Shown piece after piece: positions 12,191-32,600 of a stretch of 64,000 bases of DNA. Location of the stretch: IMG/VR virus record IMGVR_UViG_3300032294_002797, positions 62,001 through 126,000 of that record, one strand, 5' to 3'. Each line of letters starts with the position of its first letter. Within the stretch, counting starts at the first letter, position 1. The position numbers and the translations under genes are program-made. The notes beneath the pieces were generated by a model. That model made no database searches. It was not told the DNA's origin and worked only from the letters and a program-made list of their open reading frames with translations.

Positions 12191-12499
12191 ATGACAGATA
12201 CTGAACGACTGATATTTCATCTTAAAAAAAGAGTAGAAACAACAATGATAGGAGCATTAAGCAAGTTTGAAAATACTTTTGGATTTTTGTGGGGGCAAGA
12301 TATTGAAAATGAAGATAACCTTACCTCGGAACAAATAGAATTTTCTGATATGTGGGAAAGAACTAGAAATCAGATTCTAAACCAAGGAAATGCTCAGATC
12401 AGAAATCTTGAAGATGATTTTTATAAGTATGGTGGATTTTTTAAGCAAAATTTCAATTATTCTTTTAGAGTACCAAAAGATAATACAAAAAATAATTAA
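12191..12499 (+). CDS. Hypothetical 102-aa protein, chaperone region
   Basis: Intact ORF with AAGGA RBS. Confidence 0.65.
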   Translation: MTDTERLIFHLKKRVETTMIGALSKFENTFGFLWGQDIENEDNLTSEQIEFSDMWERTRNQILNQGNAQIRNLEDDFYKYGGFFKQNFNYSFRVPKDNTKNN

Positions 12500-13494: not shown

Positions 13495-16400
13495 ATGGCT
13501 AGAGGATTTAATCTTACAGCAGAAATCAATCTCAGAGGTCCGTCTAATATTAGGCAAATAACGTCTAATATTCGTAGACAGCTAGGTAATATCAATGCTA
13601 ATATCAATTTAAATATAGATAGAAATGCATCTAGAACAATTACTCAAGTCAATAATAATCTAAGAGTATTAACACAAACTTTAGGAGCTACGACAACAGC
13701 TGCGACAAATGCTACTACAGCATTTAATAATTTGGCGGCTGCGATGAGAGCGGTTGGAAATGTGAATTTGCCCGCAACCATCAGTACTCCTTTGGTTAGA
13801 ACAGCCGGCGCCGCCAATAACGCCAGCAGAGCCATTGCGCAAGCCAGAACAGAATTTGAGGATTTCGGTCGTCAAGCAGGACTAGCCGTACGACGTTTTG
13901 CTGCGTTCGCTTCTGTAACATCTGTTATTTACGGCGTTACAAACGCTCTGGCCAAAGGTGTTCAACAGTATATAGAATTTGATAGACAAATCGTTAGATT
14001 GTCACAAGTTACTAATGAAAGCAGAGAATCATTATCTGCTATGGTACAAGAGATAACAAAATTAGCTACAAATTTTGGCGTCTCATCATCGGATATTTCT
14101 CAGGTTGCTGTAACATTGGCGCAAGCTGGTTTAACAGCTAAAGATACGAGAATCGCGCTAGAAGCATTAGCTAAAAGTGCTTTGGCCCCATCTTTTGATA
14201 GCTTATCAGATACTGTAGAAGGCAGTATCGCGCTTATGAGACAGTTCGGCATTAGCGCTGGACAGCTAGAAAATGCTTTAGGTAGTGTAAATTCTGTTGC
14301 TGCGGCTTTTGCCGTAGAAGCCGGAGATATTATTACTGCTATACAAAGAACTGGTGGTGTATTTGCTGCTGCTAGTAAAGGTGTCAGTGAAGGCACAGAT
14401 GCGTTAAATGAATTTATTGCAGTATTTACTAGTGTTCGTGCGACTACTCGCGAAAGTGCTGAAACTATCGCCACTGGATTAAGAACTATTTTTACTCGTA
14501 TTCAAAGAGGAGATACAGTAGAAGCCTTAAAAGAATTCGGAGTTACTCTCACAGACTTAGAAGGTAAATTCGTTGGGCCCTACGAAGCTGTGCGCAGACT
14601 CAGCGAAGGATTAAGTAGACTAGATCCCAGAGATTTAAAATTTAGTAGCATAGTAGAAGAACTTGGTGGATTCAGACAAATCGGTAAAGTGCTTCCGTTA
14701 ATCCAACAGTTTTCCACCGCTCAAGAAGCTCTGAAAATTGCACAACAAGGTCAAGGCTCTCTTGCGATAGATGCGGCTAAAGGTCAGATGGCACTGGCGG
14801 TTCAAATACAAAAAGTAAGAGAAGAATTTAGTGCTTTAGTTAGATCTCTAGGAGATAGTAAGGGTTTTCAAACTTTAGTGAGACTTGGTTTGGATTTAGC
14901 CAGCGCACTAATTAAAGTAGCTGATGCAACTAAAGGTGTTTTGCCATTAATAGCTATTATGGGTGCTTTTAGAGGAGCTAGTGCCCTCACTCAATTTGCT
15001 GGTGGTTTTGGTGGAGGTTTTAGGGGTAATCGTCAACGAGCCAGAGACGGAGGTGTTATAGGTTTTGCTAGAGGAGGATTGGTTCCCGGCTCAGGAGATT
15101 CTGATAGCGTCAATGCTAGATTAACTCCTGGTGAGTTTGTAATGAGAAAGAGTGCGGTTAGAAGTATCGGTGCTGACAATTTAAGCAGCATGAATCGTGG
15201 AGGAGGTATAAAAAAATTACGAGAAGGAGGATATACTGTTAGAGAGCTTGCTGATAGTCAGAGAACTATCATAAATAACTATTTATATCCACGTAACAAA
15301 AACTCTAACTTAGAATTAAATGATAAAGTTAATGCTCAAATTATTAGAGTTAAAGAGAAACCGCTCACTGATGCAGAGATACGTGAGATCAAAGGTGCAT
15401 ATCCTACGTTAACTGGAAAATTAAAGACAAAAATAAAAGATCCTAAGAATAGAAAATTATTAGTAGAATCTCAGCGACCAACCTATCAAGGACCTGAATC
15501 AGATTCTATAGATGGTCTAGAGTATTCTCGTGCAGAAAAAGCCTGGGCTACTAAGTATGAGGAAATAATCAGGAAAAGACATAATCTTGAAGCAGCTAAT
15601 AAAGACAATCCCAATTATCCTGTAGACACCGTATCATCTCGTAACGTATGGGGGGAAGTAAAATTTAAAACTACCAAAGAACCAAAACGAGCTTTAATAG
15701 CTAAATTGTTGGCTAAAAAATTATTAGATAGATCAGTTAATAGGTTTTTTAAAGAAAATTCTTCGGACCAAGTTGACGGATCCATAGAAACAGACCCGCT
15801 TGGTCGTAATACTGTCAATCTAGGCAATCTTGAATACTATGGAGGAGATACAGGTCCTGGATTAGAATCTCATAAAAAGCAATTTTATAGGAAATTAAGA
15901 TCTGGAGGTATTGTTCAAAAATTTAAAGAAGGGGGTGAAACCCTTACTCTTGAAAAAGCAAGAGGCATGAGTAGAAAAGATATCCTAGATATTTTATCTG
16001 GCAGAAAAGGTGGCATAAGTACAACAGAAAGAGAAGTTGGAGTTAGTTCAGGTGAGATATACACAATACTAGGACAAAGAAATCCAGATGCAAAAACACA
16101 AGGACTTAAAGAAGCTATTCTTCAAAAAGCTGTTACAGCAAACAATAGGCAATTAGGAGCAGCAAAAGCTCAGATAACTAAATTACAGAATAATAATCTA
16201 GAAGTTGCCGCAGCAGGCTTATTTGGATCGAAATTTGCCGATCAAAATATGGATATCGAATCTCCGTCACTTTCTCAGTCCGCAAAGGTTAGAGTTATTA
16301 GCGGAATAATGGATAGTAAAATAGCTTCTTCTTTTAGCTCTATTGTATCAGAAACAACAGATAAATTAACCACGAGATTAGCAGAGGTAGCCACAACAGG

Positions 16401-19400
16401 CGATATACTAGCAAAACTTGGGCTAGGTAAAGAACTTAATACGGATTTTGACCGAACACTAGTTACTGGAGCCGACAAGATATTATCCGATCCAGGCAAA
16501 CCAGTGTTTTCGGAGTTTAGTGACCCAAATAAAGTATCTGCAGCATTACAGGGAGCAGAATTAACTTATCTTGGATCATCTTTAGTAGAGTTGATAAAAC
16601 AAAGAAAAGATTTATTACAATATATACGAGTGGTGACGGCTAGACCAGAATCGACTTTGGGTCTTATACAAGGATTTTTAGCCAGTAAAGATCTACCCAT
16701 ACCACGATCTCAATTTAAAGGCTTTGGTGGCGAAAATATTAGTGCAGATGAAATTGCCGAATTAAAGGCTGCATTTTTGAATCCAGATTCATTATTTGTT
16801 GATGATGATCCGCGTAATATAGCAGCAGCCAAAAAACGATCTAATGAAGGTATCACTAGTTATTTATACGGAACTGGCAAAAGTTTACCAAATTCGCAAG
16901 CACAGGGAGATATAGAGGGGTTATTACTAGAACAGGTTGTACAAAAACTTGGTGGTCCCGGAGCCCTCAAAGGCATGGGATTTGATTTTCCCAATGGGTT
17001 AGGCGATGCTGCTAAATATTTTGGACTACCTGATGATATACCCACAGATGTTAAGAGAACTATTAGTGGGCCATCCACAATCAAAGATAATATCGTTACA
17101 TATTTAAAGAACGTTATGGGCTATGCTGGTGGTGGGACTGTACCTGCTATGGTTAGTAATGGTGAAGCTTATGTTCCTCCAGCTATGGCTAAAAAAATTG
17201 GTTATGGGAAACTCCATAAAATGAATCAGGCTGATCGAAATGGGATGAATAGTTTTGCGAGTGGAGGGATGAGCATATTTAAAGGATCGGGCACTGGAAC
17301 CAGTGATAGTATTGGTCCTATAGGATTGCCTGTTGGCAGCTTTATCTTAAGAGAAAAAGCCACGAAGGCTTTGGGGTTGAATAGCGGAGGCAGGGTACAG
17401 AAATTCTTATTCGGAGGCAGAAGCAGAGGGCCAGCAGCAAGACCCGATGCTATTTCTGTAGATACAATAGGAGCGAGTAATACTGCTGTCAGATCTCTAG
17501 GAGACCTAGCTACAGTACTTAATGATTTAGGAGTTGCATCCTCTAGATCCTCTCAATTATTGAGTCGTGGATATCAGGCCACGGCAGCAGAAGCACAAAG
17601 AGCATATGAGGCCGATCTAGTTATGGCTCGCGCAGCCGGTGCTAGTGCAGATGTATTATACGATCTAGAACAAGCTTTAATTAGAACCAGACAAGAAGCA
17701 GAAGCAGAAGTAGCAGTAATGCAATCTTTAGCAAACATGAGTGGAGTAGAATTGCAAGATACTCTAAGCGACATGGAAGATGAATTAAGAAGATTGACGG
17801 ACGCCGCTAGGAATGCCGCGGCCGCTGCTGGACTAACCGGAGAGGAACTAGAAACAGAAGTTAGAGCAGGAGCTGGAGATCGTCGAAGACAAGCTTTCGA
17901 AACTGTTGCGGCCTCTGGAACTGGTCCACTTCGTGCCCTTGGTGGAGGAACTGGTTTAGATTTAGCTGCTATTGGCGCTACTGGAGATGATCTGGGTAGG
18001 GTTATTAATAATTTGATGAGAGACGCAGAAACTCTAGAACAGATGAATATGCGATATACTCAAAATCGCAGAGAAGAAGTAGCACAAGCCGCTATGGCTG
18101 CCGGTAATATAGCTAGAGCAGCTAGAATACGAGCTGGTAGTGAAAGAGATGTAGAAGAGACTATACAGAGAGAAATAAGAGCTAGAACAACAGCAGTAGA
18201 ACAAAATGCTAGAAGTACTGGAGCTAGGGGTCCAGATGAAGCTAGAGAATTTAATAGGCAAAATAATATGCTAGCTTCTTTTGCCGTTATGACCGTTGGG
18301 AATATTATTGCTGATACTATCAATGCTAAATCTAGCGCCACGGAAGCTGGTGTTGCTGGAGGTATCAGAGGAGGAACTCAGGCTTTTGCATATGCAAATC
18401 AGATTAGTGGAGAATTAACTAATTTTGCAGATGGTCTTAGTCGTACGGGGAATAGATTTGCTGGCCTAGCCAGTAATATTGCTAGATTTGCTGGAAGAGT
18501 TCAAATTTTTGCTGTGCTAGGAGAAGCAGCTATACAAGCATATAATGGGATTAGACAATTTGGTATAGAATTAGAAAAAAATAGAGTTGAGCAAGCTCTT
18601 AGTGGCCTTACCGAACAATTTGATAAGTTAAATAAAGATCTGAATCAGTTAGATCTTAGAAATGCTATTCAGTCAAATATTATAGATGCTAGCAGATCTT
18701 CGGAAAGACTAAGATCACAAACATTAGATACGGCCTCCGCTGGATGGATCAATGGTATAGATGTTTTCATATCATCTCTACAAAATAGTGAAACCAATAA
18801 TACCAATAGGAGGGCTGCTTTAAGATCACAAGTATTGGAAAAAGAAGGTATTATGGAATATATCAACACTAGTTTTGGAGGTGCTGATACTTATGCTGCC
18901 AAAGCAGCAAAATATAGTGGACAGCAAGCTCTAGAATCTAGTCAATCCTTTAAGCCAGTAGCTGATAATATTAATCAATTAATTTCTGCCCGTATTAGAG
19001 GAGGAGAAAATATTGGAGATATTCTTGGCGGACCGGAATTTAAAGATTTTGCTACATCCTTAGTTTATGCTGATAGTGCTTTAAATAAGCATATTCGTGA
19101 GATAGAATTATCTACTAGATATACAGAAGAAGAGAAAAAAGCTCGTATAGATGAGATTATTAGTATACAAGGAGCTAATAAAATTCGTACGCAGGCCGCA
19201 ATTGCCCAGAGAGAAAAAGATCAAAGAGAATTAGGCACAGTAGCTTCTGTATATACAAGATCATTAAAGAGAATGTTTACTAATATGGAACAGGCTATAA
19301 ATGCTGCTGCATATTCATTAAAACAAATGACGGACAATATAGATTTAAATGTTAGCGCCCTACAAGGACAAGCCAAAGTAGGTTCAGTTGATTTACAAAC

Positions 19401-22400
19401 ATCTAATATTATACAAAATCCACGAGCCTATAATCCCGGAGTAAGATCATCTGCTCAGGCATCTGCCTCTTCGTTATTTGGTACAAGAGCACCAGAAATG
19501 GCGCAGCTTATGAATCTTGGAGAAACAGTAGAAAATACTGTTATGTCTACTATCAATAAAACATTAGAAGACAAAGGTCCAGATGCCTCTAATGAAGCTA
19601 TAGCCAGAGCTGTAGATAAAAGCGTACGAGACGAACTCAGTGGATTAGGATTACCTCCGGAGCTAGCGGATAAATTAGCTAAAGAAGTTGGTGATACATT
19701 AGTAGATTTAAGAAAATCTGGCGACGAAAAAGTTGATTTTGCCAAGCTTTCCGAAAAACTAGGATCGTTGTCTAGCGTTATAGATACAGCAAAAGATGCA
19801 CAGCAAGCAGCTATCAAAGCTTTAGAGAATTATCAGAATGTTTTGAATGCTTATGCTAATAATATTAATCGTATTATTGACCTGGAAACCAGTGCTAGAG
19901 ATAAATTTAATAAATCTGTCAATATCGCTGCTGATGGTAGTACCGCTTTATCTAAAGCTCTTGGCAGAACCATCACTGTCGCAGATGCTTTTGCTAAAAG
20001 AGATGCTTCTATTGCTAGACAAACAGGTGGTCTAACTGATCCAACGGATATCTTTAATAAGATCTTAAGTCTGAATAATAATAGAGATATTTTACAATCA
20101 TCTAGTAGAGAAGCGGCTGATAAAGGTCCTGCTGGTATTCAAGATTTTATCAAATTTAATAGCGAACTTAAGAATACTAATATTGCTTTAAGAGAAAATA
20201 GAGCTGCTTTAGAGGATATGGCTACTAATACAGAAAAAGCAAGCTCAGCTATGGATGCTATACAAGAAGCTCAACAAAAAGCAGCTGGTAGAATTGGCTT
20301 CTTAGAAAAAGTAGTTACCAGTACTCCTGATGAATTAGATTCGTTAAATCAATCTTTGTATAGACTGCAAAGAAATATGAATGGTCAACAAAATACTATT
20401 CAGAATAGCATAGGTGCTCAAAAGGCATATAGGGATGCATTAAATCAGGGAGCTTCTGCTGCTGAAGCTATGAGAGCTGCTCAAACAGCTTTTGCCAACG
20501 AAAGAAAGGAAACCCTAGGTACTCTTCAAGATATTATGCCATTTTTAGGAGACAATCAACAAGCAAATAATATTAAAGCAAATGTTCTAGAGACAATGTT
20601 AGCCGAGTCCGGCATGGGAGTTTCTCCGCTATTCCAACAGATACTCAATACTCTACGAAATCCCGAACAAGATCCCGCCACAGCTGCTGCTATACAATAT
20701 TATAATCAGTCAATAGCGGAACAGTCAACAGCTACTAGATTATTAGGACAATTAGATCAACAACTAGCCAATGATATAGCAGTACAAAATAGTAAACTAA
20801 TAGTAGACGGCTTAACTAAAACAGTATTAACTTTCCAGAATAATGAGCTTAGAGATATAGCAGACAAAGTCAATACAATGGTTTCTATTATGCAGAAAGC
20901 TCCTGGCGCTGGAGGTTTAGCTAGCGGAGGCATGGTTTATGCTGCTGGTGGTCAATTTATCAATTTTCAACCAAAAGGTACAGATACTGTTCCTGCAATG
21001 CTAACACCGGGAGAGTTTGTTGTCAATAGAGCCGCTACTCAAGCGAATCTTCCGTTATTAAAATCTATTAATAATGGATATTCCAGAGGAGGTAAAGTAT
21101 CTTATTATGCTGCTGGTGGTTTTGTTACCAATTGGGGCAGTCAAACTAGTATGGATGAATTTGGCATGATGAGTGATAAAGAGATTATTGATCCTAGTGT
21201 AGAAGCTAATAGAGCCATTTGGAGTGCTGGATACAAGCAGAATATTAGATTATTACCTAGTTATTATACTTTAGATTTTTCTGATGATAATACTACGATC
21301 CCATCACCGGGAGCAGACCCCGATAGTCCTAACTTTAACTTAGATCAAATTAAACCAACAAGTGGTAAAGTTAGAGTTGGCTCAGCAGTTGGTATTTCCA
21401 GGGTTGGAGATGATCAGTATGCATATATAGACAACCAAGGTGCTATCGACGCTAGTAGCGATATGCCTATTATCAAGGCTGCTGAGACAAATTTATATTT
21501 GGGTTTAGACAAGTTCAAATCAACAAATTTTGCTCAGTCCAAGGCTACAGAATACAAAGATCGATTTCGATCATTTGAAGCATTAGACTCTACTCTTCAT
21601 AAATCTATAAGTATGGATCCTATTGCTTTTGCTGATGATCTTCCAAAATTAAGTGATTTTACTTCTAATGCTAATGAATGGAATCCTACACTAGCTGGTA
21701 AATCATACGGTATAGCGTTTGATACTTCTACAGAGATTAGACCAACTGATAAAGATGTGTCTGCTGCGCCTTCTTTTAAAATTTGGTACTATAAAAGATC
21801 CCCATTGAATTATGCGGGCTGGGCTCCAGGACTAGCGATGGGAGTTTCTGTAAAGCAGCCAAATTTCGATATTGGCACTCCATATTCCTCAAATGATGGA
21901 TTCGATAGCAAAAGCTGGGTCGTTTTCGGATCTGGTAAGTATAAATCCGCTATGTATCCTGACTTAGAAAAAATGAATGGTGTTATTACCGGCAAAGGAA
22001 TAAAAGACGCTAATACTATTAGTTCAGAGAACTATGAGCTATATAAAAATACAGTAGATTTTTTAAGTGGAGCTTCCACATATAAGGATACCGGCGGCCT
22101 TGGTGCAGCTTTACAACAAAAATTATCTAGTTTATATAATGGTCTAGCACAATTTATAACTCTTGATCAAAATGAAATAGCCCCCTTAGATGAGCTAGTC
22201 AAATTGAATGCTACTAGCGCAATTATTGCACAACAATCTTTAGAGCAACAATTTAAAGATGGCCTTCAGTTTATAGATACTAATGCTGCTAAATATAATA
22301 AAGTAAAAATAGGATTGACTGGTGCCAAACCCGCCATCAAAAATCCAGATTTCTTAGCCTCTAAGCCTTTTGATATAGAAAATACAGCAACAAAAATATC

Positions 22401-25400
22401 CAAGTCTTTTCCGTTCATGATAAATGGAAATATGCGTGAGATTCTAGGTAAAGATTTTGAGGATGTCGCTGCTCAACAAGCTGCTGCTACTAAAGGCAAA
22501 GTACATAGCAGATTACTACCGGTTGACGAATTAAAGGTCAATTTACCAGTGAATATACAGGGTAAACAACCTCAATTATCTATACCAATAGCTTATGAAG
22601 AATATACCGGAGAACTATTTGATCCATCAACTAAGAATTTTGATGGTAAGCCTTTTACCACTTTGTTGCCTAATAATATTTCAGAAACTCTTTTTCAAAA
22701 TTTGGACGAATCACGAAAAAGATTATTTACAACTAAAAAATATACAGTACCAGATATTTTAAAAGCATCGAAACTAGATGATCCTACTAATCCGATTTTT
22801 ACTGATATAATAGACTTATTCAAGTTTCAAACTAATAATGATCCTAATGTAGATGCACAGGCTAAAAAAGTAGCAGCAAATCTTAATTTAGTATTCGATC
22901 ATCCTCAAAATTCTTTAATTAAAAATGTAGGCTTAGCTGGAGACGGCGGGGTAGATGTGTTCTCTGCTATGAGCGATGAGCCCACCACAGTTAATGTAGG
23001 AGAATTTTTACTCAAAAAATTCCAAGAGTTTAGAGGCCAGCTAGCTTCTGGAGCAAATAAAGTAGATCCAATTATGCCGAAAGGCGCTGTATTTTCTGAT
23101 GCTGAACTTCCTCAAGCAACTGCCGCACTGATTCGTGGATCGATGGCATTATTTGGGGGCCTAAAATTACCGGGTGCTCCTTATGGATGGCTTTCTAAAT
23201 CTGGTGGTCCTCAAGCTCTCAGAGCTGCTATATCAGGTAACCCCGTAGCAGCAGCGCAGCATATGGCAGGAGTATTAAATCAAGCAGGAGCTTATGTCTC
23301 GCAATTACAAAATAGGGCTCCTAATGTATCAGCTTATAATGCTCTAGATAATGCTATGACTATGATTAGTGGAGCAGCTAATGCTTTTGGTTCCTTAGCT
23401 GGTGGGGATACTAGTCTGTTAAAGCAGTTTTATGAGAATAAGGTGCCTATCGCCGCAGTATTTCGTAGTTTAGGAGCTGCGTCTAGATTTGGTAAAATAT
23501 CGGGTATGAAATTGAGTCCGGATTGGCAAAATATATTAGGTAATCAGCTTCAGGGATCCAAATTGAAAACTGTTGGACGAGATGGTTCATTATCAGACGC
23601 CACGTTAGTTAGTGCGATACCAGAAAACGCCACTGTTTCTGATTTAGTCAAAGTAATTTTTAATCCATATAATGAATTTGCTGGTAAAGATATACGAAAA
23701 GGTCTTATTCAAAAATTTGGTGATGATATATTCAATCTGAGAGGACCAAATCGCATGCCGTATTTTGATCCTCAAACCTTATCTTTTATTAGAACGGGAC
23801 TTTATCGTTTGATGGATTGGTATGGAGGAAAAGGAAATTGGGTAGGACAAGACTATTTCTTTGATGAGAAAAACGAACCAGATAATGCTCTTCGTATGGC
23901 TAATTTTGCTCAATCTTTAAAAACAGATGGGTCTCAATTCTATAAAGACGCTATGGAAGCCCATACTCTATTTGGTTTGTCTAATGCTTTTGGAGCTTTA
24001 CCAACAGATCAATGGTTTATGTCTCGTGGCGCTGTATTGCCACAAAAGAAGGCGGCTGGCGGAGTTATCTATGCTCAAACGGGTGGAAACTTAGTCAACT
24101 TTAAACCCCAGGGCACTGATACAGTTCCCGCGATGTTAACCCCAGGAGAATTTGTTGTTAATAGACGAGCAACACAAAAAAATCTACCACTACTACGATC
24201 CTTGAATAGTGGTGGATCTACAGGATATAGTCAAGGAGGGGTGGTTTATTTAAGCGGCGGAAGTGCCGACCCTGTTGTAGACGTTACCGGCAATGGTGTT
24301 GGAAACATATCGCCAAAAGTTATTCAACAAGCATTGATTACAGGGATTAGAAATGACCAATTATTAGCCGGTAATGCATCTAGAGAAGATACTTTGGACA
24401 TGACGGTGAGAGATTATACTAGACGAACGGTTTTCAAGGACCATCTTTTAAATCTTGGTGTTACTCCAGAACAGCTTAAAATAGCAGAAGATGATCTACG
24501 AGAAAGATCGGAAACCGGCGTAGACTTACCGGCAGGTGATATGTATGATAGACAAATTGCGGGTACTTTAATTAGACAAGGAATATCACAAGATATTATT
24601 GATAAAGCTAAAAAAGCTAATTATGAAGCACAAAATAAGACATTTCGTATACAAAAAGATTTGTTTGATAAGAAAAAAATGGCATTAGCAAGATCTAATG
24701 TTTTTGGTGTTGAATATTTTATGGGAAACTTAAGCATTTTTGATGCATCTCGTGGGGCACGTAAAGATAAAAAACTATTAGAAGAGCGTTTTAAATTAAC
24801 AGATATGACCAAAGATAATACTGTTAATGTACTAGATTTATTAACATGGTTATCTAGAAATCCAGATGTTCAATCGGCTGCTAATCCATATATCAGCTCA
24901 TCCGATGCCTGGATGCCCAAAGGCTTTTTATCTGGTAGTGGCGGTGTATTTTCTGATACTACTCGTAAACAAGACGAAAGAGCCGAAATAGAACCGCATA
25001 TTCGTACTCTCTCTCCTCAACTTGATACATGGGCGAATGTTCTCAGGTATAGACTAGATTCTGCCCGACAAGCCCAAGATCTAAGAGATGCAGAAGCTAA
25101 ATTAGCACAAAATCAAACAAAGGAAAAACAAGGGGTTGAAGCTTGGGGTAGCGGTGGAGCCGGAGGGATAGATCCATCTGAAATTAATACGCTAAGAGCC
25201 AAACAAAAAGAATGGGGACAGAAAAGATTACAGTATATGGAAAGACTAAATACTTTAGAAGGTCTTATTTCTTTAAGAGCTATCGGCGGTACAGGAGTGG
25301 GGTCTTTGGAGGAACTTGTCGCCAATGAACAAGGTATGTCTACAAGTATTAGAGATAATGAACAATTAGGTTTGAGAGAAGATATTATAGATGAAGGCAA

Positions 25401-28400
25401 TAGAGAAGGTTTGCGTAAAGGAGCGAGAAATTTAGTCATGACAGCAGCAATAGGCGCTGCTTCACCATTTTTATTGCCCGCTGGAATAGCAGCTGCTGGA
25501 GGAGCAGCGGTATTAACTATCGGAGGTTCGCTTGGAGCAATGTATTTGGCTGATGCTGTTGAAGAAAAGAATTATCAAAATCTAAAAAATACCGATCCTA
25601 AAGAATTTGCTCGTCAACAGTTATTAAGAAGTCAAAATTCGTATCAGGAAGCTGCTGCTTCTATGGAAAATATTGTAGACATTGCTGATATGGCTTTGGG
25701 TATTGGCGCCGGCGCTGTAAACACAAAGGGATTATTTAAATATAGATTTTTTCAAGAAGCTGCAGACGGTCAGCCTGTCAAGATAAAAAATACTGCTGTT
25801 AGTCGTTCAGCAGAAGCTAAGGACATAGCAGATAAAAGTAAAGCAGCTCTCAAAGACATGTCCGATGATGCAAAAGCTAAACCAAAAACAGCTGATGATG
25901 TTAAAACTGATACTGAAGCTAAAGCAAAAACGAAAACCGAGCAACCGGCAACACCAGAAAAACCCATTAAATTTAAGAGTCCAAAAGTAGCAGAAGCCTG
26001 GAATAATGCCGTAGCCGAAGCTAGAGCCAAATATAATAAGTCTATAAATGAATTTTCAGACCAACAGATGAAAGATTATTTTGAGACCGGACCAGGCTCA
26101 GCTGCTAAACAACAAGTTAATGCTCAAATAGAACAATTGAAACTTGATGCTGGTGCGACAAAGATGAACGATGCTGATGCTTGGAATACCATAGCAACAC
26201 AGTATCCCGATAGATTTGGACAATTTGCAGATGATCTGAAGAAAAATGGATATATGATAGATGATGATGGAAATATTATATTTGGTCCTAATGCTAGAGG
26301 TATTGTAGATTCTGATCCCAATATGGCCGGGGCTTTTGAAAATGCTCGTACAAAAGCTAGACAACAGGGTATAGACGAGGCCGCTGATAAATTAAAAATT
26401 AAAAAAGGTAGTAAAGATTATGATGATTTAGTAAAAGCATATGATGATGATATTAGTATTAAAGGAAGAACATGGAGAGGATATGTCAAAGATAAATGGG
26501 CTGCTGTCACTAAGTCCAAATGGGCAAGATTAGCAGCGGGTGGTGCCGCATTACTGGCTGCATGGCAGGCTTGGATGATGCTTAATGCAAATAAACAAAA
26601 TCAAAAACCCCCAGGAGGTGCTCCAACAATTCCACCAGCTCCTGGTACTGGAGGTTCTGGTGGTGGTGGCGGCGGCGGTAGCGGTGGAGGTAACACACCA
26701 ACTGTTCCCCCTCTGGAGCCCACTGTTGTCGATCCTGCTGGTAAAACTGTTAAAAAGATAGAAACTCCTAATTATTATGATGAATTAACATATAAAGAAT
26801 ATGTAAGTAGACAACTAGTGGCCGGTCATGCTCCACCAGAGCCGATCAAAAAGTTATTTACTACGGCCGCTGTTTATGGCTATCAGACAGATGCTACAGG
26901 CAAGAGAATTAGAGGTAGTAATAGAAGAACCACAGCATATGATCAAAGAGATACTAGTGGCTTAAATAAAGGTATTGGTTTAGAAGGAGATGAAACCGGC
27001 GGCGCTATGCGCGCTAAAAGTCCTGTTGGAGGCAGAACTGTTTCGTCTCAAACCCACACTACTACCGCTCCATTTGTCCCTAGTTCTACAACATATGATG
27101 GAAAGGGCGGGTTTAATTATAAGCCAGGCGGTGCTCCTCAAGATACTAGAAATTTATCAGAAGAAGATAAAGCTAGAATAAAAAAACAAGGAGGATTCTT
27201 ACCATCCGGCCAGTTCGGTACTGACCAAAATAATAAAGAAGGTAATGCGGGTATACGTCAATCTGCGGGGGCCGCACCAGCAATACCATTTGGTGTTCGA
27301 CCCGTGCCTCCAGAAAAAAAACAGGGAGCCGCAGATGAATTTGTAGAGTCTGCAAGTAGTACAGACGTTGCTAAACAAATGGAAATAGCAAATCGACCAA
27401 TGAGTGTTCGCGGAAAAACAGTTATGTGGGGTAGAACAAGCCCTCTTACTCAATATAAAACAGCTTATGCATTCTGGAGACGTAAACTAGGAGAATATAA
27501 TTATTTTAATAGTATAGCTTATCAAAAGAAAGATAGATGGAAAAAAGGATTTGGTAAATATGATAGTGTCTTAAAACAAGAAAAAGAAGCACAAGGATTG
27601 TCTAGGGGTGGTGTGGTATATGCTCAAAATGGCATGCTTATTCCTTATCAACCTAGGGGTACTGATACTGTTCCGGCTATGTTAACGCCGGGTGAATTTG
27701 TGGTTAATAGAGCCGCCACACAAAAACACTTGCCTTTATTAAAAACTCTCAACCGTAGCAAAGGCGGAACTGTTTCATATTTATCAGCCGGAGGACAATC
27801 TGCTCCCGCGGCTCCTCCTTTGTTTGTATCAGACAAGAATGCTGCAAAACTCAGTAATGTTGGTAAAGATGTAAAAAATGTAGAGATTCTTGGCAAGGAT
27901 ATCAAATCATTATTAATTAATAATCCTGTTCCTAAAAAATTAGATGAATCAACAGGTAAAATTTTAGATTGTTGTAAAGATAGTCAAAATAAAAACCAAA
28001 AAAATGCAGAAAATATTTTAACGCTACAACTACAAAATAGAACTAATATGGGTATTAGTACAAAACTCATTATGGGCGCCATAGAATATACTGGAATGAA
28101 AGCCGAGGCCGCGATAGCCAAAGCTTCAGTTGAAAAACCAGCTTGGGTAGACGAGGAAGTTAATAGCATACAATCAAAAATAATTGTAATGATTAGTCAG
28201 AGCATAGACTCGGCGAAACAATCAGTAACCGACACCATTGGGGCGGCCAAAGATGCTCTTGCGGGTATGCTCGGAGGCGCCGCTGCACCTGCTGGTGCTG
28301 TTCCTGGTCCCGCTGCGGCCGGTGCCGCCGCTGCTCCTGCGGCGGGAGCCGCTGGTTTGTACAACGGAGGTATGGTATATGCTAGTAATGGAACTCTTAT

Positions 28401-29670
28401 AAATTATCAACCAAGAGGCACAGATACCGTACCAGCAATGTTGACTCCTGGAGAATTTGTAGTTAATGCTAGAGCAACAAAAAAACATTTACCTCTATTG
28501 AGTGCTATTAATGATGGAAATTATAAAGCTGATGGTGGTATTATCACACCGAGTTATTATGCGAACGGGGGTCACAACCCAGATCATAAGCAATGGGCTG
28601 AAGCGAGACAAAGACACGAAGAACGTCAAGAACAAACTCAAATATTAAGCGGATATAAAAAATTTGGAAATAGAGCGCCATTATTTTTTGAAATAGATAA
28701 TCAGATAAAGCAAGCTCGTAATCTGTTTGATGCACTTGATGCAAACGCTATTAACGAAGATCTAACTAAAGATCAAGTTATAACTATGGTTGAAGATAAA
28801 ATAGCAAAAGCATCGTCCGATCAAAAGGCTGCTCTCATAAATGCAGAAAGAGCAACGGCTCAACAACGCTTTCAGTATTTATTAGGTGTCGTTCAAAGAT
28901 CTTCTGTAGCTATACAATCTCTAACAGGTAATGCTAGAAATTATGAGTCGGTACAAAATCCTGGATTTACTTACTATGATATTCTAGATGCTCAAATAAA
29001 GCATGGCCAGGCAGAAGGAAAAGCGCTATACGAAGGATGGTTAGAATTAAATAAAGAAGTGGGCTCAGTATCTTTACCGGGCTCAACAGCGGTAGGTTTA
29101 CCAGCACCAGGAGCAGGAGGAGCGAATCCGCCTGTTGGTAAACAGTACGGAGGATTAATTTATGCTAATAATGGCATGTTAATTCCTTATCAGCCCAAAG
29201 GAACTGATACTGTGCCTGCTATGCTCACTCCTGGTGAATTTGTAGTTAATAGAAATGCTACCAGGAATAATCTTGCTTTATTACAAGATATTAATAGTAA
29301 TAGATTTAATAATGGTGGTCCTGTAGTATATAAGCAAGCGGGCGGTCCTATTATGTATAGGCAATATGGCGGAATGACGGATGAATCTGGCGGAGGCACT
29401 AGTGGTGTATCTAATAGTGGCGGACCTGATTTTGATAAATTAGCCCAATTTACCGCCACCTTTGATAGATTTATTGGCCAATTACAAAAACTTAATATTC
29501 CACCACAAATTAATTTAACTCTAACACAACAGAAGCCATTGGAGATTAATGTTAACGGAGCAGAAGCACTACAAAAACTATTGGAAGGTCCATTAGGAGA
29601 TATTGTAAGAGGAAATGTCAATACAGCACTTAATCAAAATCGCGTAGGTAACGAAGAACCACCACAATAA
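13495..29670 (+). CDS. Giant modular tail tape-measure protein (5391 aa) with repeat-bounded cargo domains
   Basis: N-terminal TMP core (FDRQIVRLSQVT..ATNFGVSSSDISQVAVTLAQAG..); long Ala-rich helices; canonical position; eight copies of a GTDTVPAMLTPGEFVVN-type module; embedded HAD and PD-(D/E)xK-like motifs. Confidence 0.9.
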   Translation: MARGFNLTAEINLRGPSNIRQITSNIRRQLGNINANINLNIDRNASRTITQVNNNLRVLTQTLGATTTAATNATTAFNNLAAAMRAVGNVNLPATISTPLVRTAGAANNASRAIAQARTEFEDFGRQAGLAVRRFAAFASVTSVIYGVTNALAKGVQQYIEFDRQIVRLSQVTNESRESLSAMVQEITKLATNFGVSSSDISQVAVTLAQAGLTAKDTRIALEALAKSALAPSFDSLSDTVEGSIALMRQFGISAGQLENALGSVNSVAAAFAVEAGDIITAIQRTGGVFAAASKGVSEGTDALNEFIAVFTSVRATTRESAETIATGLRTIFTRIQRGDTVEALKEFGVTLTDLEGKFVGPYEAVRRLSEGLSRLDPRDLKFSSIVEELGGFRQIGKVLPLIQQFSTAQEALKIAQQGQGSLAIDAAKGQMALAVQIQKVREEFSALVRSLGDSKGFQTLVRLGLDLASALIKVADATKGVLPLIAIMGAFRGASALTQFAGGFGGGFRGNRQRARDGGVIGFARGGLVPGSGDSDSVNARLTPGEFVMRKSAVRSIGADNLSSMNRGGGIKKLREGGYTVRELADSQRTIINNYLYPRNKNSNLELNDKVNAQIIRVKEKPLTDAEIREIKGAYPTLTGKLKTKIKDPKNRKLLVESQRPTYQGPESDSIDGLEYSRAEKAWATKYEEIIRKRHNLEAANKDNPNYPVDTVSSRNVWGEVKFKTTKEPKRALIAKLLAKKLLDRSVNRFFKENSSDQVDGSIETDPLGRNTVNLGNLEYYGGDTGPGLESHKKQFYRKLRSGGIVQKFKEGGETLTLEKARGMSRKDILDILSGRKGGISTTEREVGVSSGEIYTILGQRNPDAKTQGLKEAILQKAVTANNRQLGAAKAQITKLQNNNLEVAAAGLFGSKFADQNMDIESPSLSQSAKVRVISGIMDSKIASSFSSIVSETTDKLTTRLAEVATTGDILAKLGLGKELNTDFDRTLVTGADKILSDPGKPVFSEFSDPNKVSAALQGAELTYLGSSLVELIKQRKDLLQYIRVVTARPESTLGLIQGFLASKDLPIPRSQFKGFGGENISADEIAELKAAFLNPDSLFVDDDPRNIAAAKKRSNEGITSYLYGTGKSLPNSQAQGDIEGLLLEQVVQKLGGPGALKGMGFDFPNGLGDAAKYFGLPDDIPTDVKRTISGPSTIKDNIVTYLKNVMGYAGGGTVPAMVSNGEAYVPPAMAKKIGYGKLHKMNQADRNGMNSFASGGMSIFKGSGTGTSDSIGPIGLPVGSFILREKATKALGLNSGGRVQKFLFGGRSRGPAARPDAISVDTIGASNTAVRSLGDLATVLNDLGVASSRSSQLLSRGYQATAAEAQRAYEADLVMARAAGASADVLYDLEQALIRTRQEAEAEVAVMQSLANMSGVELQDTLSDMEDELRRLTDAARNAAAAAGLTGEELETEVRAGAGDRRRQAFETVAASGTGPLRALGGGTGLDLAAIGATGDDLGRVINNLMRDAETLEQMNMRYTQNRREEVAQAAMAAGNIARAARIRAGSERDVEETIQREIRARTTAVEQNARSTGARGPDEAREFNRQNNMLASFAVMTVGNIIADTINAKSSATEAGVAGGIRGGTQAFAYANQISGELTNFADGLSRTGNRFAGLASNIARFAGRVQIFAVLGEAAIQAYNGIRQFGIELEKNRVEQALSGLTEQFDKLNKDLNQLDLRNAIQSNIIDASRSSERLRSQTLDTASAGWINGIDVFISSLQNSETNNTNRRAALRSQVLEKEGIMEYINTSFGGADTYAAKAAKYSGQQALESSQSFKPVADNINQLISARIRGGENIGDILGGPEFKDFATSLVYADSALNKHIREIELSTRYTEEEKKARIDEIISIQGANKIRTQAAIAQREKDQRELGTVASVYTRSLKRMFTNMEQAINAAAYSLKQMTDNIDLNVSALQGQAKVGSVDLQTSNIIQNPRAYNPGVRSSAQASASSLFGTRAPEMAQLMNLGETVENTVMSTINKTLEDKGPDASNEAIARAVDKSVRDELSGLGLPPELADKLAKEVGDTLVDLRKSGDEKVDFAKLSEKLGSLSSVIDTAKDAQQAAIKALENYQNVLNAYANNINRIIDLETSARDKFNKSVNIAADGSTALSKALGRTITVADAFAKRDASIARQTGGLTDPTDIFNKILSLNNNRDILQSSSREAADKGPAGIQDFIKFNSELKNTNIALRENRAALEDMATNTEKASSAMDAIQEAQQKAAGRIGFLEKVVTSTPDELDSLNQSLYRLQRNMNGQQNTIQNSIGAQKAYRDALNQGASAAEAMRAAQTAFANERKETLGTLQDIMPFLGDNQQANNIKANVLETMLAESGMGVSPLFQQILNTLRNPEQDPATAAAIQYYNQSIAEQSTATRLLGQLDQQLANDIAVQNSKLIVDGLTKTVLTFQNNELRDIADKVNTMVSIMQKAPGAGGLASGGMVYAAGGQFINFQPKGTDTVPAMLTPGEFVVNRAATQANLPLLKSINNGYSRGGKVSYYAAGGFVTNWGSQTSMDEFGMMSDKEIIDPSVEANRAIWSAGYKQNIRLLPSYYTLDFSDDNTTIPSPGADPDSPNFNLDQIKPTSGKVRVGSAVGISRVGDDQYAYIDNQGAIDASSDMPIIKAAETNLYLGLDKFKSTNFAQSKATEYKDRFRSFEALDSTLHKSISMDPIAFADDLPKLSDFTSNANEWNPTLAGKSYGIAFDTSTEIRPTDKDVSAAPSFKIWYYKRSPLNYAGWAPGLAMGVSVKQPNFDIGTPYSSNDGFDSKSWVVFGSGKYKSAMYPDLEKMNGVITGKGIKDANTISSENYELYKNTVDFLSGASTYKDTGGLGAALQQKLSSLYNGLAQFITLDQNEIAPLDELVKLNATSAIIAQQSLEQQFKDGLQFIDTNAAKYNKVKIGLTGAKPAIKNPDFLASKPFDIENTATKISKSFPFMINGNMREILGKDFEDVAAQQAAATKGKVHSRLLPVDELKVNLPVNIQGKQPQLSIPIAYEEYTGELFDPSTKNFDGKPFTTLLPNNISETLFQNLDESRKRLFTTKKYTVPDILKASKLDDPTNPIFTDIIDLFKFQTNNDPNVDAQAKKVAANLNLVFDHPQNSLIKNVGLAGDGGVDVFSAMSDEPTTVNVGEFLLKKFQEFRGQLASGANKVDPIMPKGAVFSDAELPQATAALIRGSMALFGGLKLPGAPYGWLSKSGGPQALRAAISGNPVAAAQHMAGVLNQAGAYVSQLQNRAPNVSAYNALDNAMTMISGAANAFGSLAGGDTSLLKQFYENKVPIAAVFRSLGAASRFGKISGMKLSPDWQNILGNQLQGSKLKTVGRDGSLSDATLVSAIPENATVSDLVKVIFNPYNEFAGKDIRKGLIQKFGDDIFNLRGPNRMPYFDPQTLSFIRTGLYRLMDWYGGKGNWVGQDYFFDEKNEPDNALRMANFAQSLKTDGSQFYKDAMEAHTLFGLSNAFGALPTDQWFMSRGAVLPQKKAAGGVIYAQTGGNLVNFKPQGTDTVPAMLTPGEFVVNRRATQKNLPLLRSLNSGGSTGYSQGGVVYLSGGSADPVVDVTGNGVGNISPKVIQQALITGIRNDQLLAGNASREDTLDMTVRDYTRRTVFKDHLLNLGVTPEQLKIAEDDLRERSETGVDLPAGDMYDRQIAGTLIRQGISQDIIDKAKKANYEAQNKTFRIQKDLFDKKKMALARSNVFGVEYFMGNLSIFDASRGARKDKKLLEERFKLTDMTKDNTVNVLDLLTWLSRNPDVQSAANPYISSSDAWMPKGFLSGSGGVFSDTTRKQDERAEIEPHIRTLSPQLDTWANVLRYRLDSARQAQDLRDAEAKLAQNQTKEKQGVEAWGSGGAGGIDPSEINTLRAKQKEWGQKRLQYMERLNTLEGLISLRAIGGTGVGSLEELVANEQGMSTSIRDNEQLGLREDIIDEGNREGLRKGARNLVMTAAIGAASPFLLPAGIAAAGGAAVLTIGGSLGAMYLADAVEEKNYQNLKNTDPKEFARQQLLRSQNSYQEAAASMENIVDIADMALGIGAGAVNTKGLFKYRFFQEAADGQPVKIKNTAVSRSAEAKDIADKSKAALKDMSDDAKAKPKTADDVKTDTEAKAKTKTEQPATPEKPIKFKSPKVAEAWNNAVAEARAKYNKSINEFSDQQMKDYFETGPGSAAKQQVNAQIEQLKLDAGATKMNDADAWNTIATQYPDRFGQFADDLKKNGYMIDDDGNIIFGPNARGIVDSDPNMAGAFENARTKARQQGIDEAADKLKIKKGSKDYDDLVKAYDDDISIKGRTWRGYVKDKWAAVTKSKWARLAAGGAALLAAWQAWMMLNANKQNQKPPGGAPTIPPAPGTGGSGGGGGGGSGGGNTPTVPPLEPTVVDPAGKTVKKIETPNYYDELTYKEYVSRQLVAGHAPPEPIKKLFTTAAVYGYQTDATGKRIRGSNRRTTAYDQRDTSGLNKGIGLEGDETGGAMRAKSPVGGRTVSSQTHTTTAPFVPSSTTYDGKGGFNYKPGGAPQDTRNLSEEDKARIKKQGGFLPSGQFGTDQNNKEGNAGIRQSAGAAPAIPFGVRPVPPEKKQGAADEFVESASSTDVAKQMEIANRPMSVRGKTVMWGRTSPLTQYKTAYAFWRRKLGEYNYFNSIAYQKKDRWKKGFGKYDSVLKQEKEAQGLSRGGVVYAQNGMLIPYQPRGTDTVPAMLTPGEFVVNRAATQKHLPLLKTLNRSKGGTVSYLSAGGQSAPAAPPLFVSDKNAAKLSNVGKDVKNVEILGKDIKSLLINNPVPKKLDESTGKILDCCKDSQNKNQKNAENILTLQLQNRTNMGISTKLIMGAIEYTGMKAEAAIAKASVEKPAWVDEEVNSIQSKIIVMISQSIDSAKQSVTDTIGAAKDALAGMLGGAAAPAGAVPGPAAAGAAAAPAAGAAGLYNGGMVYASNGTLINYQPRGTDTVPAMLTPGEFVVNARATKKHLPLLSAINDGNYKADGGIITPSYYANGGHNPDHKQWAEARQRHEERQEQTQILSGYKKFGNRAPLFFEIDNQIKQARNLFDALDANAINEDLTKDQVITMVEDKIAKASSDQKAALINAERATAQQRFQYLLGVVQRSSVAIQSLTGNARNYESVQNPGFTYYDILDAQIKHGQAEGKALYEGWLELNKEVGSVSLPGSTAVGLPAPGAGGANPPVGKQYGGLIYANNGMLIPYQPKGTDTVPAMLTPGEFVVNRNATRNNLALLQDINSNRFNNGGPVVYKQAGGPIMYRQYGGMTDESGGGTSGVSNSGGPDFDKLAQFTATFDRFIGQLQKLNIPPQINLTLTQQKPLEINVNGAEALQKLLEGPLGDIVRGNVNTALNQNRVGNEEPPQ
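15088..29250 (+). repeat. Dispersed in-frame module repeats in the TMP
   Basis: Exact GTDTVPAMLTPGEFVVN at 20977, 24112, 27658, 28417 and 29200; degenerate copies at ~15088, ~17137 and ~17281. Confidence 0.95.
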
Positions 29671-29682: not shown

Positions 29683-32600
29683 ATGTCAGACAATATAATT
29701 TCCGGAATATTATATCTAGGCTCTGGTACAGGATATGATAATATTATATCAGATACTTCCGGTGTTAATACTGTTTTTAACAGAAACGGACAAAATATAG
29801 ATTTCGCCGTATCTGGCACAAACAGCTTTTTATATTATGATGCTTCGACCGGTCGCTTAGGGTTGGGAGATAAAAATCCCGATGCTGCTTTGCACGTTAT
29901 AGCTCCTTGTGCATATGACGGCCTCAAAATAGAAGGAACCACAAACTGTCCTACTGGTGTAAGACTGCTGCTCTTGCACAATCCCGGTATTTCTCCAGAA
30001 TCCGGCAGCTATCCTTCTACTATAGATTTAGCTGGTCATGATACTAATAGTCAAACTATAAATTATGCTCAGATACGATCAAAAGTTTTAAATCCGACTA
30101 CATCAGCTACTAGCGGCGAAATTATCTTTAATGTTGATCATACTGGTACTTTGAGTACAGTTTTTAGAGCTAATACTGCCAATACTGTTCTTGGTGGATT
30201 AAATATTATTAATGGATACTCATATAATGTTCTGGGGTCAAATAATACTCTATCTGGTTTACTATATATAGATCTAGGTTCTAATAACGCTGGTACTGTT
30301 TATTCTGGTTTATTATTAGGAAATAATATTGATATCAACGCATCTAATGCTATTTGCGTATCTAATACTGCCGGGTTATCTGGGATTAATATCTTGTTGC
30401 TAGGCAATAATACATTTGTAAGTGGATATACCAATGTTGTAGTAGCAAATAATTCAACAGTTTCTGGGTCAGAGAATATATTATTAGGCAATAATAATAC
30501 ATTATCTATAAATACAAATAAAATTATTGGTTTATTTAATAATGCAAATATAGGCGGTTCATCAGGCGTAGGTATGGGATCTGATGTTAGAGCTACTGGC
30601 ATAAATAATGTATTTATTGGTAATAATGTTACTATAACAGGAGCCAATAACTCCGCTATAGGCACCAATACTTCTATTAGTGGAAATAATAATTTAGTTT
30701 ATGGTGGTTCATCTAGCATAAGCGGCTTTAATATAGTATCTATAGGAAATAGTATTAATCCTGTCGGAGTTTCTAGTGGTTTATTCATAGGTAATGATAT
30801 TGATGTATCTGATAGTAGCAGATCCGTTGTTATGGGTCTTGGTAATCAGATTGATAATATCTTAAATAATAGTACTATCATAGGTTTAACTAATGATACG
30901 TCGAGCGGAGAAGCCAATGATTTAGTAATTGTAGGACAAAACAATAAATCATCCACTATCACTAATACTCTGGTGATGGGTAATAATAATAATATAAGCG
31001 GTACTGCTAAAAATAATATTGTATTAGGTCCTAATAATTTTAGTGCTTTAACTAGTAATAATAATATTATTATTGGAGCATTAAATAATAATAGTGGTAT
31101 GAGAGTTACATCTGACGGAAATATCTCGGGCTCTCCTTCTCGTAGTAGTAGCACCGTGACTAATAGTTTGATGTTAGGCATTAATAATATAGGCTATAGT
31201 ACCACTAATACTACTATAGTAGGAAATAAAAATTATCTCAATGGTAGTAATTTTAATTCTATTGGTTCTTTCAACAACATAAAAAATACTAGTAACACAC
31301 AGAATATCGGCAACAACAACTTTATTTTGGGCGACTTTACTAATATATTAGGTGGCAGAGTAACATCGATTGGCTCATCTTCTATTATTAATAATCCCTC
31401 TAAAAGACCAGTATATTCTTTTGGAGATGGCAATATTTTATTTGGAAATAATGAGATTGTAGTTAGTGGCTTATGTATAGGAGACAATAATGATCTATTG
31501 GGTTTAAATAATATTGTTTATGGGAAAAATAATTTTATTGGAAGATCTAGAAATCCTTGTATTGTAGATGCTGCAACTGTCATCATCAACGGAGATGTGA
31601 CAGCTAACTACAAAAATGGAGATAGGGTATTAGTATCTATTGTAAATCCTGCTGCTACCGATAATATCTATATAAGACTAGTAGATTCAGTATCATATCA
31701 GAATGTAGATGGCCTTACTCTTATTAATTTAAGCGAAGGTATTGCTCCAGTAGGTGTTGATTATGGAGTTCAGTCTACTTTCGACGGATCGTTACCATCA
31801 CCGTCTGTTACAGTTAGTGGTTGGGTAATGCCATATCAAAATGGAAATGATTTGACAGATCCTGTTGGAGATCCGTTATATGGCGATAGTAATATTGTTA
31901 TAGGAGATAGTAATAGGTATCCCAATACTAGTGGATTAATATTGGGCAGATCTAATAGTGTGACAGGAGTGAATAATATAGTTATTGGTTATGGTATTAC
32001 TAATTATACTAATAATAGTGTGCAAATTGGTAGTAATAATGCTAATAAAATTTATTTTGATGATGATACTATCGTTTTTAATACTGGTCTTTCTCAAAGC
32101 ACAGTAATACTTAATAGTAGATTAGCTGGCACTACTCTATTAGCAAATCTAGCTCAGAATAGAGTTGGTATTAATACTAGCGTACCACGATCTACCTTGG
32201 ATGTTAGTGGAACATTAACAACCAATACTCTACGAGTAGGCCTAAGCGGTATTCCAGGATATACTCTGACCTCTGATGCTAGTGGAAACGCCACATGGCA
32301 GTTCCCTGTTAATTTATCTGGTATTAATAATGGTATTTTATATCGCATTAATAATAAGGTTGCTAGCGGAATTAGTGAACTAGTATTTAATCCGGTTAGT
32401 AAATTTTTAACATATCTCAAACCGTCTGCTACTAATATTGGCGATTTTGAAGACGCATTCATACTTACTCCATCTGGCTTATTTATTAATGATACGGTCG
32501 ATGATAATAGCTCATACAATATTACAGTGAAGGGGTCCGGTGTCGGACTGATAGAAGGAGTAGAAGGCTATGATCTTCGTGTTAATCTACTCAAAACTCT

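Follow-up and report, generated by a model that had tools for sequence, protein, structure and literature searches.

By its length, a tape measure protein (TMP) determines that of the phage tail, and TMPs have a membrane-insertion role. TMPs with embedded cell-wall hydrolases are already known; Piuri and Hatfull reportedly described in 2006 a cell-wall hydrolase motif embedded in the TMP of mycobacteriophage TM4. The TMP of the Thermus phages P74-26/P23-45, at ~5,000 amino acids (aa), is understood as a ruler only. The tail of these phages is nearly 1 µm long (PMC10034513). Here we analysed a 64,000-nucleotide stretch of viral DNA (hereafter the window; positions 62,001 to 126,000 of IMG/VR record IMGVR_UViG_3300032294_002797) that encodes a 5,391-aa TMP, in which copies of an ~80-aa sequence module alternate with mutually unrelated segments (A to I; Table 1). 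A preliminary description of the window had read this protein as an array of enzymes to be delivered into the host. Based on our results, we propose as a moderately probable explanation that it is an accretive modular TMP with non-lytic enzymes inside the chain, in which the module would act as an interaction or registration element and an embedded phosphatase would be delivered with the intact chain.

Gordonia phage Yeezy provides a precedent for an enzyme placed beside a module within a TMP. Its gp18 has three module copies and carries an SLT transglycosylase directly before the second (SLT domain, aa 1511-1601; adjoining module, aa 1598-1643), which shows, as judged from sequence, that an arrangement of functional insert followed by module occurs in a cultured phage too. 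However, the enzymes of actinobacteriophage TMPs are peptidoglycan hydrolases for penetration, whereas the present protein has a HAD phosphatase-like domain with a PD-(D/E)xK-like partner, is 2.5-4 times longer and has eight modules. The TMP gp16 of mycobacteriophage Douge (PDB 8ZDO/8ZDQ), with copies at aa 958-1034 and 1412-1460, is the sole entry with a solved structure that bears the module; it forms a trimer in the tail lumen, of which only the last 42 residues were modelled, plugged in the baseplate hub (PMC13033339). Unlike the present protein, it is 1,699 aa long, and its module regions are unmodelled in that structure. The protein has no cultured relative. YomI of the Bacillus SPbeta group is a large TMP with an embedded lytic transglycosylase and the best cultured match to the N-terminal core (24% identity), but it is very distant and shows no sign of a multi-module layout. 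The Thermus phage TMP is comparable in size and belongs to a very long tail, yet no Thermus phage is among the 171 cultured-phage records in which we found the module. Polyvalent proteins (Iyer et al. 2017, PMC5512222) are also very large, multidomain and delivered with the DNA, and ADP-ribosyltransferase, nuclease and phosphoesterase domains occur both in them and in relatives of the TMP. However, they are head-packaged and typically contain a processing metallopeptidase, whereas here the chassis is a TMP and the chain consists mostly of sequence other than effector domains; the polyvalent-protein survey mentions tape measure proteins zero times (PMC5512222). As far as we found, with incomplete coverage of the literature, neither the module, nor giant TMPs of this family in jumbo siphophages, nor a HAD or ADP-ribosyltransferase domain in a TMP has been described.

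The TMP open reading frame (ORF; 13495-29670, plus strand) is a single reading frame with zero internal stops. In profile searches its N-terminal core matches the TP901 family (PF10145, 6.8e-24; phrog_28, 5.5e-30; TIGR01760, 3.6e-29), with scores above the curated cut-offs of PF10145 (85.3 bits; cut-off 33.2) and TIGR01760 (101.9 bits; cut-off 28.8), and the helix-former-rich segment D together with a hydrophobic stretch at aa 3980-4016 is a further TMP trait. The ORF is the tail TMP of an uncultured jumbo phage, the TMP identity agreeing with the preliminary description. Two IMG/VR contigs, each from a separate metagenome, match a 21-kb part of the window (5937-27124) at 100% identity, namely 3300032294_002797 (L001; 223,302 bp) and 3300033571_026375 (L002; 119,799 bp), so that this is a jumbo phage with a genome of at least 223 kb that recurs between samples. 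Megablast searches with 12 kb and 8.8 kb of window DNA against 50,697 phage records gave zero matches, and no tRNAs were found for this phage that could hint at its host. Isolate genomes contained no prophage related to the TMP, the matches being short contigs of metagenome-assembled genomes (MAGs) with inconsistent taxonomy; four such contigs with TMP-core relatives (L161-L164), binned in Alphaproteobacteria, Thermoplasmatales and Woesebacteria MAGs, almost certainly belong to phages and were wrongly binned with cellular genomes. Database searches recovered more than 300 giant TMP relatives of 3.5-7.9 thousand amino acids (kaa) on phage contigs of up to 241 kb.

The chain contains five near-identical and three degenerate copies of the module, between which lie mutually unrelated segments. 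A hidden Markov model (HMM) built from the five strong copies detects these (aa 2466-2547, 3510-3594, 4693-4771, 4946-5029 and 5208-5289; i-Evalue 1e-40 to 1e-45) and two weaker ones (aa 515-579, 1e-7; aa 1212-1259, 3e-4), and a profile of 145 copies returns the same seven matches with no others in the six-frame translation of the window. The remaining copy (copy 3, aa ~1266-1300) was recognised by eye and is not scored by the profiles in this sequence, but the orthologous position scores 26-28 bits in three relatives (P0014, P0015 and L003), where it forms a tandem weak-module pair before D. The eight copies, their punctuation of the chain into unrelated segments and the cassette boundaries, to within a few codons, are therefore as first described, except that the separator placed at 15900-15940 is not a module but a short GG-x-x-QKF-x-x-GG motif.

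Each module consists of a Gly-rich flank, a D..A.L..GE(F)V core, a single amphipathic helix with L..hN at its end and another Gly-rich flank. Across the 145 copies, which derive from many phages, no change occurs at the residues D, A, L, G, E, V, L and N. Among the five strong copies the 17-residue core GTDTVPAMLTPGEFVVN is invariant in amino acids, an identity that exceeds chance by far, while its DNA shows, per pair of copies, a mean of 9.1 differences over the 16 third-codon positions that are degenerate, with longest common nucleotide runs of 8-15 nt. An identical peptide over divergent third-codon positions indicates purifying selection on the module at the peptide level and not recent duplication. 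We likewise rejected gene conversion and a role as recombination substrates as origins of the repeats, since synonymous sites are near saturation and common runs do not exceed 15 nt. AlphaFold2 (AF2), run on the 145-copy alignment, predicts coil and one helix with a predicted local distance difference test score (pLDDT) of 65, and the module is thus not an autonomous domain; it probably becomes ordered only within an oligomer or on a partner. An identity as LysM, suggested by eye, was rejected, as the Pfam LysM model is silent and the AF2 model lacks such a fold.

The module extends far beyond this protein. By tblastn it occurs in 171 cultured-phage records, always under genes annotated as tape measure, some of which carry an 'endolysin' label at NCBI, and the hosts of these phages include Gram-negative bacteria and mycolata. 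Many PHROG TMP families are matched, with the module mostly 50-150 residues before the C-terminus, and its profile retrieves 19,898 representative clusters from 1.84 billion proteins (6,220 at 1e-10 and 1,032 at 1e-30). A protein contains at most ten copies, and the cluster that includes the 5,391-aa protein shows seven. Usually the module is single and close to the TMP C-terminus, as in phage PmaS-R3, where a 783-aa TMP ends 54 residues after it; KiSi and Kikimora also have one copy each. Cultured-phage records, PHROG families and copy counts in cultured TMPs thus bear out the earlier statement that an ordinary TMP has a single motif of this kind. Neither Pfam nor NCBIfam has a model that covers the module, which is an ancient, strongly constrained and general TMP element.

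To describe the layout of the family, the modules and the nine pieces of the 5,391-aa protein were mapped onto 120 relatives. They share a common order, which starts with core A, a weak module, variable region 1 (170-2,600 aa, including B in some relatives), C, a spacer of 0-1,500 aa, one or more weak modules and D (~1,150 aa). The order continues with a strong module, E or another piece of ~800-1,500 aa, a strong module, zero to six units of variable cassette plus strong module, and a tail of ~90 aa. Smaller TMPs (2.0-2.6 kaa) of the same superfamily have the layout A-m-x-m-D-M-tail only (m, weak module; x, short variable region; M, strong module). In all 77 loci inspected the modules lie within one ORF, which argues that no gene fission has taken place at modules.

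The conserved segments are A (118 of 120 relatives), C (82-90), D (all 120), E (about 60 from sequence and more when spacing is counted) and the C-terminal tail I (52-92). The swapped ones are B (5 relatives with BLAST and 23 with an iterated search), F (15), G (3) and H (7-24). The expectation that cassettes vary while modules stay fixed thus holds for several segments, which change in number and identity, but not for A, C, D, E and the tail; nor do cassettes shuffle freely, a possibility we rejected because common cassettes retain their order across relatives (for example M-H-M-tail). Mosaicism at the level of cassettes is evident among the closest relatives. In P0003, segment C is 55% identical whereas A and D are 93-96% identical, and the C-terminal tail of P0002 is 72% identical. 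Slot B is wholly replaced in P0001 and P0002, with both flanks ~100% identical: identity persists until '...PGEFVMRKSAVRSIG' within module 1 and returns at 'GG(I/V)(V/I)QKFK.GGETLTLEKAR', and the ~230 residues between are unalignable. The joint GG-h-h-QKF-x-x-GG, which marks this downstream breakpoint, recurs at the ends of region-1 cassettes in relatives and could be related, as a minimal form, to the Gly-rich flanks of the module. An arms race would fit the turnover of slot B, which could just as well stem from evasion of TMP-sensing host defences, among them SNIPE (bioRxiv 10.1101/2025.11.03.685801).

Segment C is confidently predicted to adopt a HAD-phosphatase fold with conserved catalytic motifs. 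Its HAD part is modelled by AF2 as a globular alpha/beta domain with pLDDT mostly >90, and the best 22 Foldseek matches in the PDB all belong to the HAD superfamily, mostly phosphatases (E 4e-4 to 5e-2, probability 0.8-1.0, target TM score 0.33-0.48), led by phosphoserine phosphatase (1nnl), AphA, SP_2064, HisB-N and Pnkp1 (probability 0.97-1.0). Structure matches in BFVD are phage phosphatases and polynucleotide kinase-phosphatases (PNKP), and a profile search aligns motifs I, III and IV with those of the HAD hydrolase 2hoq. The four motifs occur in order (I, DFDRT, aa 984-988; II, TAR, 1048-1050; III, K1091; IV, DDDPRN, 1103-1108, with DD at 1103-1104). In an alignment with 46 relatives the nucleophile Asp is kept in 35/39, the second Asp in 34/40, the Thr of motif I in 34/40, the Thr/Ser of motif II in 33/35, the Lys in 33/33, and the Asp-Asp of motif IV in 40/43 and 35/43. 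The HAD models of Pfam and NCBIfam stay below threshold on C, and a search for stand-alone homologues gave only a fragment. Judging by its motifs, the phosphatase is probably active.

The 85-residue C-terminal subdomain of C bears a PD-(D/E)xK-like triad that is conserved among the same relatives (D 41/46, D/E 40/42, K 34/40), and the 13 divergent members of the B family share an invariant E, P, D and K. An hhalign comparison of the B family with this subdomain aligns the two triads at a probability of 12%. For B, profile and sequence searches found no family, PDB or stand-alone homologue and the AF2 model reaches pLDDT 45-75, and neither B nor the subdomain gave a profile or structure match to a nuclease fold, the Foldseek output being dominated by the HAD domain. 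Structure prediction thus upholds the HAD half of the earlier 'HAD plus nuclease-like' label for C, whereas 'nuclease-like', for its subdomain and for B alike, remains a motif-level lead.

Segments D to H contain no recognisable enzyme in Pfam, PHROG and NCBIfam scans. D, which is also present in the 2.0-2.6-kaa TMPs, is the probable tape proper, and the lengths of both D and E are tightly conserved across relatives. E is aromatic-rich and unlike helix, and had no match in profile searches or in sequence and profile searches of the PDB; chiefly in its last third it carries a conserved block, NPYNEF ... MPYFD ... WYGG.G.W.GQDYFFD ... PDNA.R, and in most giants it has strong modules on either side. 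For F, the PDB searches matched only Gly linkers. The tail I is a probable hub plug by analogy with the Douge TMP, whose C-terminal 42 residues occupy the baseplate hub (PMC13033339).

Table 1 Features of the tape measure protein gene in the window (m.c., module copy).
Feature	Position	Strand	Basis
Whole TMP ORF	13495..29670	+	5,391 aa; P0001-P0003 are full-length relatives at 83-88% identity
A, TP901-type TMP core (aa 1-514)	13495..15036	+	PF10145, phrog_28, TIGR01760; in 118/120 relatives
m.c. 1, divergent (aa 515-579)	15037..15231	+	17.5-36 bits; matches many PHROG TMP families
B, hypervariable slot with PD-(D/E)xK-like motif (YEE ... YPVD ... GEVK)	15232..15894	+	swapped in P0001, P0002
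Short GG-IVQKF-KEGG joint closing slot B	15895..15936	+	identity with P0001, P0002 resumes here
C, N-terminal helical part and HAD phosphatase-like domain	15937..16869	+	AF2, Foldseek, conserved motifs
C, C-terminal subdomain, E ... hDFP ... PT(D/E)VKRT (PD-(D/E)xK-like)	16870..17124	+	conserved triad
m.c. 2, degenerate (aa 1212-1259)	17128..17271	+	6.7-10.6 bits, i-Evalue 3e-4 to 5e-3
m.c. 3, degenerate (aa ~1266-1300)	17290..17394	+	by eye; orthologous copies score in relatives
D, long helix-rich conserved segment	17395..20889	+	120/120 relatives; weak TMP and coiled-coil matches
m.c. 4, strong	20890..21135	+	137 bits
E, conserved aromatic-rich segment	21136..24021	+	59/120 by jackhmmer; ~1,040-aa module spacing in most of those relatives
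m.c. 5, strong	24022..24276	+	123 bits
F, variable segment, Gly/Pro linkers and hydrophobic stretch	24277..27570	+	15/120 relatives
Membrane-span-like hydrophobic stretch (aa 3980-4016, 37 residues)	25432..25542	+	Kyte-Doolittle 19-residue mean up to 1.81
m.c. 6, strong	27571..27807	+	134 bits
G, variable segment	27808..28329	+	P0001-P0003 only
m.c. 7, strong	28330..28581	+	133 bits
H, semi-conserved penultimate segment	28582..29115	+	24/120 relatives, usual order M-H-M-tail
m.c. 8, strong	29116..29361	+	138 bits
I, conserved C-terminal tail (~90-100 aa)	29362..29670	+	92/120 relatives, terminal in all

The TMP gene is co-oriented with flanking ORFs of structural size. Pieces resembling tail fibres or baseplates occur in ORFs upstream, the immediate neighbours have no family match, and 17 neighbouring ORFs gave almost no annotation with PHROG and Pfam; a candidate major tail ORF had no PDB or phage match. 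Candidates for the tube, chaperone and hub proteins are the ORFs at 11130-12176, 12191-12499, 12523-13410 and 29683-34149. The 824-aa ORF at 5229-7703 (+) bears a tail-fibre N-terminal motif of ~50 aa (aa 344-396), matches phrog_2576 strongly (1e-73) and is also similar to parts of giant 'virion structural protein / baseplate wedge' families. ORFs of 1,488, 1,775 and 2,772 aa (29683-34149, 37267-42594 and 42609-50927, +), situated directly downstream of the TMP gene, have no PHROG match and presumably encode the hub or fibres of a tail tip of unusual size; in Pfam, run on the 1,488-aa ORF alone of the three, a sub-threshold beta-roll match was the only one. Two adjacent, slightly overlapping ORFs of 526 aa each (34159-35739 and 35672-37252, +) are diverged paralogues (25% identity, E 1e-19) without a family match, and are probably duplicated baseplate or tail-tip components. 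The plus-strand structural module is followed by ~14 minus-strand ORFs (51426-63938), a block with lower GC content (0.28-0.34) and reversed AT skew that is probably a separate transcriptional unit of non-structural genes.

To survey enzymes in the family, 150 non-redundant variable pieces (96 kaa) were cut from IMG/VR loci and scanned with Pfam. The 76 pieces from region 1 contained two ADP-ribosyltransferase domains, one SNase and one SHD1, and the 74 later cassettes two EF-hands and one HAD IIIB acid phosphatase; the relative P0058, for instance, carries an ADP-ribosyltransferase in region 1 (aa 1538-1653). Enzyme domains of types known from injected phage proteins are hence found, at the sensitivity of Pfam, in ~3% of the variable pieces, mostly in region 1 rather than between strong modules. 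Pfam found no peptidase family in the 5,391-aa protein or in the 150 pieces, and no cleavage signal was found at the modules. Instead of the several effector catalytic domains and in-chain processing peptidase of a polyvalent protein, the 5,391 aa hold one confident enzyme fold, two motif-level candidates and no such peptidase. The resemblance to polymorphic toxins that had been suggested is also absent, as the C-terminal ~100 aa are conserved (92/120), variation is internal and the next gene is the 1,488-aa structural-size ORF.

According to the explanation we favour, the giants would have grown by accretion from a basal TMP of 2.0-2.6 kaa consisting of core, weak module, short variable region, weak module, D, strong module and tail. 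We infer this from the extra units of segment plus module that the giants carry over that layout, each extra segment appearing to end with a further module copy. The three chains would be held in register by the module, or docked through it to the lumen of the tube, to the hub or to an assembly chaperone; every added segment would then need a copy of its own, which would explain the punctuation. C, with its HAD phosphatase and PD-(D/E)xK-like subdomain, and slot B lie near the N-terminal, DNA-proximal end, and the hydrophobic stretch in F fits the membrane-insertion role of TMPs. Because the TMP is expelled from the tail ahead of the DNA (PMC13033339), the embedded domains would reach the host envelope or cytoplasm at injection within the intact chain, and cleavage would be unneeded. 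Several points weigh against this account. The role of the module is purely inferential, and the module is disordered or unmodelled in the Douge structure. Three chains that each bear a folded HAD domain would be too big for a tube lumen of ~4 nm, so that in the tail the protein would have to be unfolded in part, or part of it would have to reside elsewhere. The order of accretion derives from present-day layouts rather than from a phylogeny, E, F, G and H lack any assignment, and the scant PHROG and Pfam annotation of the neighbouring genes leaves tail type and partners unsupported.

The preliminary description had instead taken the modules for processing or export tags, with the chain cut at them after ejection or during maturation to free several effectors in the style of polyvalent proteins. 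Cassettes that vary in number and identity between fixed modules, the enzyme domains present here (HAD) and in relatives (ADP-ribosyltransferase, SNase and HAD IIIB), a slot B that turns over like an arms-race locus and Gly-rich flanks that would expose the modules all speak for such release. We nevertheless consider it unlikely, since the zincin-like processing peptidase typical of polyvalent proteins (PMC5512222) has no counterpart in the protein or the 150 pieces, ordinary TMPs have the module once with only the C-terminal tail and no cargo behind it, D, E and C form a conserved core and common cassettes keep a fixed order. The statement that eight copies frame enzymes was overstated as well: B and C lie between degenerate copies, and the five strong modules frame D to H, in which no enzyme is recognisable. 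As the module is general among TMPs, a role in structure or assembly is at least as likely as one in processing or export. It is similarly improbable, in our view, that the TMP serves as a programmable delivery chassis in a large uncultured jumbo-phage clade, a tail-lumen counterpart of the head-packaged polyvalent proteins in which the module is a loading, translocation or processing signal for spliced-in payloads; that these payloads comprise HAD phosphatase, PD-(D/E)xK nucleases, ADP-ribosyltransferases, SNase and anti-defence domains fired ahead of the DNA seems no less doubtful.

Another possibility, though a rather unlikely one, is that the chain only sets the length of a very long tail (~0.8 µm at 0.15 nm per residue), the HAD domain being an inactive exapted scaffold, the segments structural filler and the modules periodic structural knots. 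This would accord with the length-setting function of TMPs, the tightly conserved lengths of D and E and the absence of an enzyme signature from most segments, and tails of nearly 1 µm exist (PMC10034513). Filler would not be expected to keep HAD catalytic residues in ~90% of relatives, however, and C is globular alpha/beta rather than tape, E is aromatic-rich rather than helix-like, and close relatives range from 3.5 to 7.9 kaa in total length because unrelated pieces have been inserted. It appears very unlikely that the module is a post-ejection anchor that binds peptidoglycan or membrane and pins the extruded TMP at intervals over the width of the envelope while it forms a DNA conduit. TMPs do cross the envelope (PMC13033339), the module adjoins cell-wall hydrolase domains in the Yeezy TMP, and by eye its core resembles the LysM-like pattern G(D/E)xh...A...L..hN; yet Pfam gives no LysM match even at E up to 1, AF2 predicts coil and one helix in place of a beta-alpha-alpha-beta fold, and the motif occurs in phages of Gram-negative and mycolata hosts, whose envelopes are very different.

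The analysis exposes an uncurated protein element that occurs in ~20,000 TMP clusters, lacks a Pfam model and is not seen in the sole relevant cryo-EM structure, and whose pattern of selection shows an essential role in TMP biology. Hundreds of environmental jumbo phages encode TMPs of 4-8 kaa on a common layout, which raises the physical question of how globular domains pass in or through a tail tube of ~4 nm. A conserved, motif-intact phosphatase and the hypervariable slot beside it, in a protein that would precede the DNA into the cell, are good candidates for counter-defence at first contact or for remodelling of the envelope, and such candidates are timely now that TMP-sensing defences are known (SNIPE, bioRxiv 10.1101/2025.11.03.685801). 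Since cultured proxies exist in Yeezy, with three modules, and Douge, with two, the role of the module is directly testable.

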